DNA of 64,000 bases from the sequence record KY555144.1. One strand, 5' to 3'. The notes beneath the pieces were generated by a model. The model did not search any database. It was not told the origin of the DNA and worked only from the letters and a program-made list of their open reading frames with translations. Shown in pieces: positions 1-53,663 of this stretch. Each line of letters starts with the position of its first letter. Within the stretch, counting starts at the first letter, position 1. The translations under genes were made by a program, and so were the position numbers.

Positions 1-426
1 CTGGAGGCGCGACTTGCCGGCTTGCCGGGGCGCGACGAGGAGGTCTCCCAGGCCCAGGGTGGTGTCCTCGATGATCTTGAGGTCGTTCCAGGACGTCGCG
101 TGCGTGGTGACGCTCCCCACCGGCGAGGCGGGGTCGACCCCGAGGATCATCTTGCCGATCTTGTGGTCGAACGCCGCCACGATCTGCTCGATCTTCGAGA
201 GCGGCGCGGTGTCGTCGAGCGGATAGGCCACGTCGAGCGTGCTCGACGGCAGCGGCGGCTTGGCGTAGGCTTCCCGCAGCTTCATGAGCGCGTCGGCCGC
301 CTTGCCGGTTGGGGCGATGACCTGGGCGATCGCCGTTTCCGGCGGACGGGCGGTCTTGCCGCCCAGGCCCAGATTGCTCAGGAAGGCCGGCTCAGGCGGA
401 ACGGAGGGGGACGACAGGCTGATCAC
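1..426 (-). CDS. hypothetical protein, runs off the left edge
   Basis: Open frame from GTG at 426 to base 1 with phage-typical codons (VISLSSPSVPPEPAFLSNLG...); absent from the ORF track because it has no stop in the window. Confidence 0.65.
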   Translation of the reverse strand, partial: MISLSSPSVPPEPAFLSNLGLGGKTARPPETAIAQVIAPTGKAADALMKLREAYAKPPLPSSTLDVAYPLDDTAPLSKIEQIVAAFDHKIGKMILGVDPASPVGSVTTHATSWNDLKIIEDTTLGLGDLLVAPRQAGKSRLQ

Positions 427-1030
427 CTCGGAGATAGAGGGGATGGCGCGGGTGGCCGTCCTTGGACTTCCCGAGGCACTTGACCTCGACCCCGGTGATT
501 TCCGCCTGTTGGACCGCGCCATAATCCTGATCCTTGAACTCTCCATGCACGCCCCAGGCGGCGATCACGTCGGCGCCGGCGGTCATGGCATATTCGAACA
601 CGTGCTGGAGGACGCGGGCGTTCATCGGCCCGATCGGGTCCTCGGCGGCCTTCATCTCCGCCGGCGAGGGCGAGCGGAAGGCGAAGAGATTGGCGACGAT
701 GATCCCGCCATAGTCGTCCCGACGCGCGAAGCCCATGCAGCGGCGGATCGTCGGATCGTCCAGCCGCGCCGTCGCGGTCGACGGGTTCAGCATCAGGAAG
801 ATCAGCAGCGGCTTGCCAGGGTCCCAGACCCGCATGAGGAGATAGCGGAAGGTCTCGCACCGCGACAGCAGGGCGGCCTTGATCACGCCATCCTCCACCA
901 CCGCGTCGCCGTAGACATCGGTCAGGTCGGGATCGAACACGGCCTCCAGCGAGGTTCCGTCCAGGACCTGGAGCAGGCCCTTCCAGGTGGCTTCCACCGC
1001 CTCGGCGGTGATCTGGGGTGCTGTCGTCAT
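392..1030 (-). CDS. DUF1643 family protein
   Basis: RYLLMRVWD, LNPSTA, DDPTIRRC, NLFAFRS, HPRHPLY motifs; start moved to ATG 1030 because the track's TTG 1066 is the -35 box. Confidence 0.88.
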   Translation of the reverse strand: MTTAPQITAEAVEATWKGLLQVLDGTSLEAVFDPDLTDVYGDAVVEDGVIKAALLSRCETFRYLLMRVWDPGKPLLIFLMLNPSTATARLDDPTIRRCMGFARRDDYGGIIVANLFAFRSPSPAEMKAAEDPIGPMNARVLQHVFEYAMTAGADVIAAWGVHGEFKDQDYGAVQQAEITGVEVKCLGKSKDGHPRHPLYLRGDQPVVPLRSA

Positions 1031-1069
1031 TCCTGACATTTGCCTTGAAACGCCGGGGCCTGTCAACGC
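1031..1069 (-). promoter_or_regulatory. sigma70-like promoter, probably leaderless, for DUF1643
   Basis: GCG-TTGACA (1066-1061), weak -10 (CAAATG), then ATG-ACG-ACA-GC, which contains the family leader motif GACGACAGC. Confidence 0.5.
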
Positions 1070-1077
1070 TTGAAATC

Positions 1078-1107
1078 AAAAGGGCCGCCCCAGCGGGACG
1101 GCCCTTT
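1078..1107 (-). terminator. intrinsic terminator
   Basis: Minus strand AAAGGGCCGTCCCGCTGGGGCGGCCCTTTT: GC stem followed by a U tract. Confidence 0.8.
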
Positions 1108-1296
1108 CTCGATCTTGTCGAACTTCGCCGATCCGAAACCGGGGCTTCCCGGCGACCGCCTCGGAGTTCGACCTTGTAGCGCCTCTAACGCTTGCCCCGC
1201 GTCGCGGCTTGGGAGCACCGAGCCTTGACGCTGATCTAGTGGGCGGCAGGTGATCGCGGCGGTCATTGCCTCCTTCAAGGGCGAGGCCCTCTCATG
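1078..1296 (-). ncRNA. candidate structured ncRNA (~215 nt)
   Basis: Bounded by a TTGACG-17-TAAGCT promoter and an intrinsic terminator; several helices can be drawn (GACCGCC/GGCGGUC, GCCGGG-AAGC-CCCGGU, AGCGU/GCGCU); no credible ORF ends before the terminator. Confidence 0.45.
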
Positions 1297-1332
1297 CCCG
1301 CGCAGCTTAGGCGGCGGCGCGGATCACGTCAA
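1296..1332 (-). promoter_or_regulatory. sigma70-like promoter upstream of the candidate ncRNA
   Basis: TTGACG (1332-1327), 17 nt, TAAGCT (1309-1304). Confidence 0.6.
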
Positions 1333-52793: not shown

Positions 52794-53056
52794 GCGCGGT
52801 CGCTCTGAAGTTCGACACGCTCGCCGACGCCGAGATGGCGGTCGCCCAGGCGCTCTACGAGCACTGGGTGCGGAGCGAGCGCGCGCGTCATGTCACCTGG
52901 AACCTCCCCGGCTGGGTCGAGCCGCCCGCCTGGGCGGACATGAACTGGACCGAGCGCACCCACTGGCTGGTCGAGGCCGGCCTCGTCGTCGACTGCCTGC
53001 TCGAATTCGTCAAGAACAACCCCGGCGCCTATGGAGAGAGCCATGAACCGTCGTGA
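52790..53056 (+). CDS. hypothetical Trp-rich protein
   Basis: Coupled 88-aa ORF. Confidence 0.75.
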   Translation: MSAVALKFDTLADAEMAVAQALYEHWVRSERARHVTWNLPGWVEPPAWADMNWTERTHWLVEAGLVVDCLLEFVKNNPGAYGESHEPS

Positions 53057-53663
53057 ACTGATCCTGGGCGCCGGCGCGGTCGTCGCGGCCTCGGCCCTGC
53101 CGACCGTGGTCGAGGCCGCGCGCATCAAGCCCATTCGACGCTTGCTCCTGGAGAGCGGCTTCGTCCAGCACGAGACCTTCGCCACCTCCTGGATGGCGAC
53201 CTGGACGGAAGACTCCCACGCCTCGCGGCATGCCGAGGTCGTGCGCGCCTGGATCGACGAGACGGTCCAGAGCGGCTATCTCAAGTGTGGCGGCGAGACC
53301 CCCATCCTCGACAAGCACGTGCGGCTTCCGCAGGTGGACTTCACGATCTCGCCGACCGACAAGGTCTGGTCGCACTGGTCGGGCTGGGTCGAGGAGGCGG
53401 GGCTGAAGGTCGTCGTGCGCGTGCTCGCGTCCGATCCCCAGGTCGATGCGACCTTCGATCCGGTCTATCTGATGAAGACCCGCTGGCAGGCCGACGGGAC
53501 CCAGGCTCCGGAGGAGACTCGCTACCTCGTCCGCCGGCCGCTCCTGCGCTACCACGAGGAGCGCGAGCTTCGCTACGCCCTCGGAGACACCGCCGGCTAC
53601 TCGCCGAACTCGTTGGTCGAGTTCGACAATAGCTGGCTTCTCACTATGGCGAAAAGCGCATGA
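53043..53663 (+). CDS. putative Tat-exported protein
   Basis: MNRRELILGAGAVVAASALPTVVEAA twin-arginine-type signal; SD GGAGAG. Confidence 0.68.
   Translation: MNRRELILGAGAVVAASALPTVVEAARIKPIRRLLLESGFVQHETFATSWMATWTEDSHASRHAEVVRAWIDETVQSGYLKCGGETPILDKHVRLPQVDFTISPTDKVWSHWSGWVEEAGLKVVVRVLASDPQVDATFDPVYLMKTRWQADGTQAPEETRYLVRRPLLRYHEERELRYALGDTAGYSPNSLVEFDNSWLLTMAKSA

Follow-up and report, generated by a model that had tools for sequence, protein, structure and literature searches.

On the minus strand of Caulobacter phage Ccr5, a relative of phiCbK, an interval flanked by a small hypothetical gene (stop codon at 1331-1329) and a DUF1643 gene (ATG at 1030-1028) has been entered as a protein gene in some phage records and left unannotated in others, which raises the question of what this interval encodes. 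(Positions are those of the window, by which we mean the whole 64,000-nt stretch of record KY555144.1 that was analysed; 301 bases around the locus are 100% identical to Ccr5 and match other Shapirovirus records, among them phiCbK, Karma, Magneto and Swift, at 98-99.7%.) An earlier note, made from the letters of the window, had read the interval as a stand-alone transcription unit for a structured RNA, put forward as a possible decoy, antitoxin mimic or regulator, or, alternatively, as a leader-peptide attenuator for the DUF1643 gene. The comparison of related phages described below argues that positions 1297-1074, on the minus strand like all the genes at the locus, very probably are the gene for a folded non-coding RNA of phiCbK-type Caulobacter phages, a judgement that covers the gene, the fold and the non-coding status alike. 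This gene, carried just upstream of DUF1643, is previously undescribed, and the 2012 phiCbK genome paper does not mention it (PMC3556154). The case matters beyond one phage. In the Caulobacter model of the cell cycle, phiCbK is the standard phage, and several annotations of its genome exist; a conserved RNA gene is nonetheless missing from its records or entered as a protein, an error that has spread into a PHROG family.

A conserved promoter and terminator

The promoter TTGACG-17-TAAGCT and, about 220 nt past it, the GC hairpin with a U run that the earlier note had described are present as stated (Table 1), and both are retained in relatives. In particular, the combination TTGACG-N17-TA(AGCT/GAAC/AGGT) plus a terminator hairpin was found in six of six relatives (Swift, phiCbK, Rogue, RBC63, BL10 and BL57), the promoter taking the form TTGACG-N17-TAGAAC in Rogue, RBC63 and BL10 and TTGACG-N17-TAAGGT in BL57; judged from these sequences, the conservation exceeds chance expectation. 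Moreover, promoter, terminator and interval are retained in all 26 of the Shapirovirus and Poindextervirus-type records, the RNA interval being 98-100% identical across 17 Shapirovirus records (including phiCbK, Karma, Magneto and Swift) and 72-78% identical in nine records of Poindextervirus or BL57 type. The terminator is near-invariant, its two changes being one-sided and pairing-preserving (U.G to C-G and C-G to U.G), and the CcrSwift record annotates it as rho-independent. Note that a generic scan for E. coli-type promoters and terminators listed neither the RNA promoter nor the terminator, and the case for these two signals therefore rests on their conservation. The promoter resembles what we take to be the Caulobacter sigma-73 consensus, TTGACGS...GCTANAWC, to which the Rogue and BL10 form is a near-perfect fit; because of this resemblance, the promoter suggests that the RNA would be transcribed by unmodified host polymerase.

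Table 1. Features of the RNA gene and its surroundings, in order along the minus strand of the window.
Feature	Position	Strand	Details
RNA promoter	1304..1332	minus	-35 TTGACG 1332-1327, 17-nt spacer, -10 TAAGCT 1309-1304
Predicted RNA, ~224 nt	1074..1297	minus	ends inferred from promoter and terminator
P0, 5' leader hairpin	1277..1291	minus	GAGGGC-CUC-GCCCUU; MFE fold, weakly supported
67-codon ORF, judged spurious	1063..1266	minus	ATG at 1266, stop 1065-1063
P1 5' strand	1258..1264	minus	GACCGCC; pairs with 1160-1154, pseudoknot
J1/2	1232..1257	minus	GCGAUCACCUGCCGCCCACUAGAUCA; nearly invariant unpaired stretch, from alignment conservation
PK2	1233..1236 with 1111..1114	minus	GAUC 1236-1233 (in J1/2) with GAUC 1114-1111 (in tail); 4-bp long-range pairing
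P2, variable two-part hairpin	1199..1231	minus	YUCC motif retained in apical loop
Invariant GGGGCA, then P2b	1178..1198	minus	P2b AGCGU-UAGAG-GCGCU, 1192-1178
P3 5' strand	1161..1172	minus	GUCGAACUCCGA = P3a GUCGAACU (1172-1165) + P3b CCGA (1164-1161)
P1 3' strand	1154..1160	minus	GGCGGUC; directly after P3b, inside P3-closed loop
P4, variable hairpin	1139..1152	minus	CCGGG-AAGC-CCCGG
P3 3' strand	1117..1131	minus	UCGG (1131-1128), invariant bulge CGA (1127-1125), AGUUCGAC (1124-1117)
Tail	1108..1116	minus	AAGAUCGAG; holds PK2 3' strand
Intrinsic terminator	1074..1107	minus	12-bp GC hairpin AAAGGGCCGUCC/GGGGCGGCCCUUU 1107-1079, then UUUUGAUU (U run)
DUF1643 promoter (neighbour)	1028..1066	minus	TTGACA 1066-1061, N17, GCAAAT 1043-1038, 7 nt, ATG 1030-1028
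RNA gene, phiCbK counterpart	complement(125342..125565) of JX100813.1

With these two signals as its limits, the predicted RNA would begin at about 1297, which is 6-7 nt past the -10 element, and would end in the U run at 1078-1074. Its -35 element shares bases with the TGA that ends the upstream gene. (Annotations of that gene, at 1329-1712 on the minus strand of the window, differ in its start: it is 363 nt long in phiCbK record JX163858, as phiCbK_166, and in Ccr10, as gp152c, and 234 nt long in JX100813, Swift, Magneto and Ccr29. In Poindextervirus-type phages a gene of different size occupies its position.) Assembled contigs of four RNA libraries from 2023 (X1-X4) span all 4 kb around the locus; contigs carry neither transcript ends nor levels. 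The phage in these libraries is, by its sequence, a close relative of the phage of the window and a different strain. Over the 4 kb it shows 113 letter differences and six gaps relative to the window; the best-supported 40 differences all fall within window positions 1-260, and there are 71 more besides these 40.

Protein-coding and leader readings

The 67-codon frame that lies across most of the interval is annotated as CbK_gp155, CcrSwift_gp152 and Ccr10_gp346, and phrog_16045, a family of 67 positions, matches it from end to end. That it is a real gene for a 67-aa protein, as GenBank and PHROGs have it, would be in keeping with this match, with a frame that stays open in all Shapirovirus genomes, and with the AGGAGG upstream of its ATG. 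However, the AGGAGG stands only 2 nt before the ATG, and the stop codon falls past the terminator, within the -35 element of the next promoter, that of DUF1643. The frame has no codon periodicity (GC1/2/3 of 0.63/0.60/0.68), whereas the five neighbouring genes have a GC3 of 0.86-0.94 and a GC2 of 0.37-0.53. The homologous DNA of Rogue, RBC63, BL10 and BL57 has no ATG, contains stops, and carries indels of one to three bases that shift the conserved blocks between frames. Some annotators also left the frame out: it is unannotated in phiCbK JX163858, in Ccr29 and in every Poindextervirus record. On this evidence the existence of a real protein gene here is scarcely credible, and the annotated 67-aa protein, as judged by its sequence in relatives, does not exist. 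The earlier note had found no credible ORF in the interval, pointing to the atypical codons, the short Shine-Dalgarno spacing and the stop past the terminator, and its view is borne out by the break in the frame in the four relatives.

It had also named an outcome that would speak against an RNA, namely that homologues keep the 67-aa frame and not the pairing. We looked at this directly, and it is base pairing, rather than the 67-aa frame, that the aligned sequences of the relatives conserve. phrog_16045 thus shares its DNA (1266-1063) with the RNA, whereas the protein reading of that DNA is unconserved in relatives; the family appears to consist solely of this frame in Shapirovirus genomes, and appears from its sequences to be a protein family built on a mis-annotated RNA gene. 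(A published phiCbK infection time course, whose reads were mapped to JX100813.1, quantified the mis-annotated CbK_gp155; PMC10688885.)

A different reading takes the element as a riboswitch or a leader-peptide attenuator of DUF1643. As such a reading would have it, the element has a terminator at its end and adjoins DUF1643 on the upstream side in each of three genera, but a second promoter lies between that terminator and the DUF1643 ATG. It begins seven bases past the terminator tail (1074) and is invariant in all close relatives, and in Colossus and PW the sequence before DUF1643 reads TTGACA-N17-TTAATT, 7 nt, ATG. Because the spacing of this promoter puts the start 7 nt before the ATG, the DUF1643 mRNA is predicted to be leaderless and made from its own promoter. 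In a transcript that reads through the terminator, by contrast, the AUG would be internal and without a usable Shine-Dalgarno sequence. The candidate leader peptides are unconserved as well: a short frame encoding MRGPRP is present at 1295-1275, just as the earlier note had it, and both this 6-codon frame and the 67-codon frame are absent from relatives. Finally, the Brevundimonas phage Kikimora carries a DUF1643 gene but no copy of the RNA. With a promoter of its own and a leaderless start for DUF1643, the attenuator proposed in the note fails, and we give it only a very slim chance of being right. The arrangement suggests, moreover, that the terminator of the RNA may also insulate the leaderless DUF1643 start. 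(The function of DUF1643 was sought and none was assigned in the literature: Pfam gives a DUF only, there is no solved relative, and Atlas returned the same family. A stretch that the RNA shares with the start of the DUF1643 mRNA, CCGAGGCGGU, is a chance likeness, lost even in Swift.)

Conserved base pairing and a diverged copy

The structure was examined in an alignment of four lineages (Shapirovirus, Rogue, BL10 and BL57). Its main helix is P3, of 12 bp, which was absent from the helices drawn in the earlier note. In the four-lineage alignment its sequence is exchanged from GUCGAACU/AGUUCGAC to ACCAGACU/AGUCUGGU in P3a and from CCGA/UCGG to CCAU/AUGG in P3b, so that half of its pairs are changed on both sides with zero unpaired cells. 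For the 3' domain as a whole, 97-100% of cells are paired, against 27-51% with the partner strand slid. When the more distant Colossus and PW sequences described below are added, six of eight P3a pairs and two of four P3b pairs (8/12 in all) are changed on both sides, with 100% of P3 cells paired, a share that falls to 27-48% once the partner strand is shifted by one to three columns; overall, the number of pairs changed on both sides goes from eight among close relatives to 19 of 34, numbers matched by 0-1 of 500 shuffles. Note that the alignment containing Colossus and PW was fitted to a covariance model, which favours the structure, that its lineages are few, with only four or five of them independent, and that a single compensatory event underlies each of P1 and PK2. 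For the MFE of the whole transcript, the z-score is -2.0. The conserved U.G pairs would be A.C on the opposite strand; they work only in an RNA of the minus strand, and the strand is therefore fixed.

Among the helices that the earlier note had drawn, the long-range GACCGCC/GGCGGUC pairing (P1) holds. It is paired in 100% of six sequences, with a single compensatory change, from G-C to A-U, in BL57 (GACCACC/GGUGGUC), and it proves to be a pseudoknot because its 3' strand sits within the loop closed by P3. A different fate befell the GC-GAUC/GAUC-AGC helix that was thought to lie inside it, since the changes in relatives only break its pairs. Its pairing is broken by a U-to-C change that is compensated in PK2, where J1/2 pairs with the tail: Shapirovirus has GAUC/GAUC there, and Rogue, BL10 and BL57 have GACC/GGUC (U-A to C-G).

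The note had also drawn three local hairpins. Its GUC..GGCU/AGCC..GAC hairpin corresponds to the variable hairpin P2, which differs in sequence in all four lineages and in each of them folds as a hairpin across the same interval. AGCGU-UAGAG-GCGCU (P2b) has a stem that is invariant among close relatives and becomes UCCGU/GCGGA in Colossus and PW, with two of five pairs changed on both sides. GCCGGG/CCCGGU (P4) is replaced with its pairing kept, by ACGUCC-AGGC-GGACGU in Rogue, ACGUCC-UA-GGACGU in BL10, CCGCGA-UCCG-UCGCGG in BL57 and GUC-GAAA-GAC in Colossus. In addition, GGCGAAG is retained even in Colossus and PW. At the position of the leader hairpin P0, Rogue and BL10 have GUAGG-AGGC-CCUAC instead, and BL57 has no clear equivalent. 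In sum, the note's proposal of a stand-alone structured non-coding RNA is upheld by a homologue comparison in which covariation keeps the pairing.

Homologues were searched for with two covariance models, R1, which represents the 3' domain, and R2. In CcrColossus and CcrPW, model R1 found a match of 24 bits in the gap upstream of DUF1643, a diverged copy at the same spot; noise in GC-rich genomes also reaches 20-25 bits, but noise alignments consist of the terminator and generic hairpins with the core deleted, whereas the Colossus alignment covers the full core, GCAUCCCU-CCGG ... CCGG-[CGA]-AGGGGUGC-AAGACC, with the tail CAAGAYC. This match is the best R1 score in the whole 280-kb Colossus genome, and its position and strand are syntenic. 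Colossus also has a GAGCGCC that perfectly complements its own GGCGCUC strand, one compensatory step from GACCGCC/GGCGGUC. (This GAGCGCC falls in the spacer of the apparent homologous promoter, so that the P1 5' strand of Colossus would be part of the RNA only through read-through or a start further upstream.)

The RNA gene is single-copy and, among the phages searched, present only in Shapirovirus, Poindextervirus-type and Colossusvirus phages. Searches by blastn and covariance model for paralogues in the window and in the Karma genome gave none; model matches at 53017-53148 of the window and near 169.8 kb of Karma lie within coding sequence and were set aside. Models R1 and R2 gave nothing credible in Bertelyvirus (CcrBL9 and CcrSC), nor in Kikimora despite its DUF1643 gene. 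In IMG/VR, a search with the invariant 26-mer and one with a gapped pattern of the core both gave only the known Caulobacter phages; in bacterial genomes the 26-mer had no match. The gapped-pattern matches listed in metagenomes and bacterial genomes were rejected, as they fall within large ORFs or do not satisfy the model.

A short unit in Kikimora is worth recording on its own account. In a 350-nt gap of that phage there is an unannotated unit of about 83 nt (L160:1501-1583 on the minus strand, which is ON529857.1 46994-47076, minus strand), with a TATAAT promoter ahead of it and a terminator at its end. It starts GGGGUCAGAAGUUAGGCUACUACAAGG, which is similar to the GGGGCA-hairpin-CUACAAGG portion of the Ccr5 RNA. 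The P3/P1/P4 core is absent, so that the unit is at most a candidate homologue.

Possible roles of the RNA

Taking these results together, we propose that a host-type promoter of its own would drive the RNA and that the strong intrinsic terminator would end transcription. Because no terminator separates the RNA from the upstream genes, the same sequence would double as the 3' end of the upstream mRNA, as in a small RNA embedded in a 3' UTR with an internal promoter. In the fold predicted by comparison, P3 with its CGA bulge closes a loop holding P4 and the GGCGGUC strand, which pairs back to the 5' GACCGCC strand to form P1; the tail past P3 pairs with J1/2 to form PK2, and P2 and P2b lie between.

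As an overall explanation, a stand-alone folded non-coding RNA that serves as a trans-acting scaffold is the best that we can offer on the evidence of sequence, and we think it probable. The specific activity is proposed more tentatively: the RNA may work in trans, its fold serving as a scaffold for a protein or a small ligand, through sequestration or within an RNP, and not through long stretches of antisense pairing. We favour a scaffold because the helix sequences drift while the junctions and the bulge stay invariant around two pseudoknots. The fixed nucleotides are J1/2, GGGGCA, ACAAG, the CGA bulge and the tail.

Several of the same features could instead belong to a base-pairing, possibly Hfq-dependent small RNA that targets the translation or stability of host or phage mRNAs, with a seed either in J1/2 (CCUGCCGCCCAYUAGAYCA) or in the C/U-rich loop of P2 (YUCC, anti-Shine-Dalgarno-like). 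Such an RNA would have its own promoter and a terminator hairpin with a U tail, as this one does; the segments conserved most strongly are unpaired in the predicted fold, and the YUCC is kept in the P2 loop though the stem around it has been rewritten. Alphaproteobacterial small RNAs such as AbcR1 use CUCCCA loops. Yet complementarity to the transcripts of the 64-kb window does not go beyond chance, the longest stretch being 13 nt and within coding sequence; J1/2 is partly taken up by PK2; and two pseudoknots with an invariant bulge are more elaborate than the typical seed-and-scaffold small RNA. The type I 3'-UTR small RNAs of enterobacteria, such as DapZ and MicL, are like the phage RNA in having the promoter at the end of the upstream coding sequence and a terminator shared with the upstream mRNA. 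They pair through a seed in an Hfq-dependent manner and have simple folds, whereas the core of the phage RNA consists of several covarying helices and two pseudoknots. We regard a seed-pairing small RNA as possible but somewhat unlikely.

The shared 3' end also admits a purely cis-acting role, in which the mRNA of the upstream operon would have its 3' end protected or processed by the element, the leaderless DUF1643 gene would be insulated from read-through, and there would be no function in trans. The lack of a terminator between the upstream genes and the RNA region agrees with this, as do the precise 5' end that a leaderless DUF1643 mRNA needs and the placement of the Colossus P1 5' strand, which would exist only in read-through transcripts. 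The terminator hairpin alone, however, would suffice for insulation, and this role leaves unexplained why covarying helices extend over about 150 nt, why the junctions are invariant and why a dedicated promoter is conserved. A role in cis alone is, in our judgement, improbable.

A topology of two pseudoknots, with hairpins that vary at the periphery and junction nucleotides that do not, might also be expected of a new class of RNA, either a self-cleaving ribozyme or a ligand-sensing aptamer. Features that recall the P1, P2 and J4/2 elements of HDV-like ribozymes (RF00094 and relatives) are the 7-bp P1 pseudoknot, which starts with G and is nested within the long helix that closes the loop, the variable hairpin that follows directly on the P1 3' strand in the manner of P4, and a C-G-A(A) joiner leading into the 3' strand of the closing helix (GGCGAA ahead of that strand). 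The BL57 AUGGCGAAG-helix string presumably resembles HDV J4/2-P2, a likeness that is a lead only. When we examined the likeness to HDV-like ribozymes, the closing helix and the P1 3' strand turned out to be only 4 nt (CCGA) apart, and these four are paired with the downstream UCGG. Thus there is no space between P3b and P1 for the HDV P3, L3 and P1.1, in whose place the phage RNA has a 4-bp extension of its closing helix. Its J1/2 region spans about 85 nt with two hairpins, unlike that of the HDV-like ribozymes, and even at E<=10 no hit came from an HDV model or from any other model of a ribozyme or riboswitch. Nor would any downstream gene be under the RNA's control. We consider a ribozyme or ligand-sensing aptamer of this kind highly improbable from the sequence. 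More broadly, and with little confidence, we conjecture that the double-pseudoknot core with its invariant junctions marks a functional RNA fold of a new class, either a ribozyme or an aptamer whose ligand is a metabolite or a protein; it would occur only in giant Caulobacter phages and would work independently of the adjacent gene. (Phage and host are both genetically tractable, so the function of the RNA is directly testable.)

The earlier note had recognised no known RNA family, and Rfam and ARAGORN scans match nothing either: Rfam 15 at gathering thresholds gave no match in the whole window, and ARAGORN found no tRNA or tmRNA in it. At E<=10 over 900-1500, the Rfam matches inside the RNA (1063-1153) lie on the terminator region or far below gathering thresholds, and the best-scoring match of that search, sul1 at 961-1015 on the plus strand, lies in the DUF1643 gene, outside the RNA. 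Further resemblances were tried and rejected. Those to the 16S 3' end and to the group I R element are not kept in BL57 or are unsupported by Rfam, and for a CcnA-like GGGG/CCCC logic (PMC8959179) a 4-mer is too weak a basis.

The RNA extends a growing set of stable RNAs in these phages (tRNAs, tmRNA and GOLLD), yet it is located apart from them. The Karma genome has an RNA island at 102.5-105 kb, about 20 kb from the RNA gene, with GOLLD (RF02032), a permuted tmRNA (RF04321) and tRNAs. With this island the RNA shares a genome and the habit of making stable RNAs from host-type promoters, and some of the island RNAs have likewise been mis-annotated as proteins; the RNA gene, however, sits outside it, and comparison with GOLLD, the tmRNA and the tRNAs by blastn, covariance models and motif combinations showed no similarity. 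Within Karma 101500-108500 (L156, which is G001:C1:101500-108500), Rfam places GOLLD at L156:1357-1843 on the minus strand and the permuted tmRNA at L156:2352-2670 on the plus strand, together with four tRNA-like matches, one of which lies inside GOLLD.
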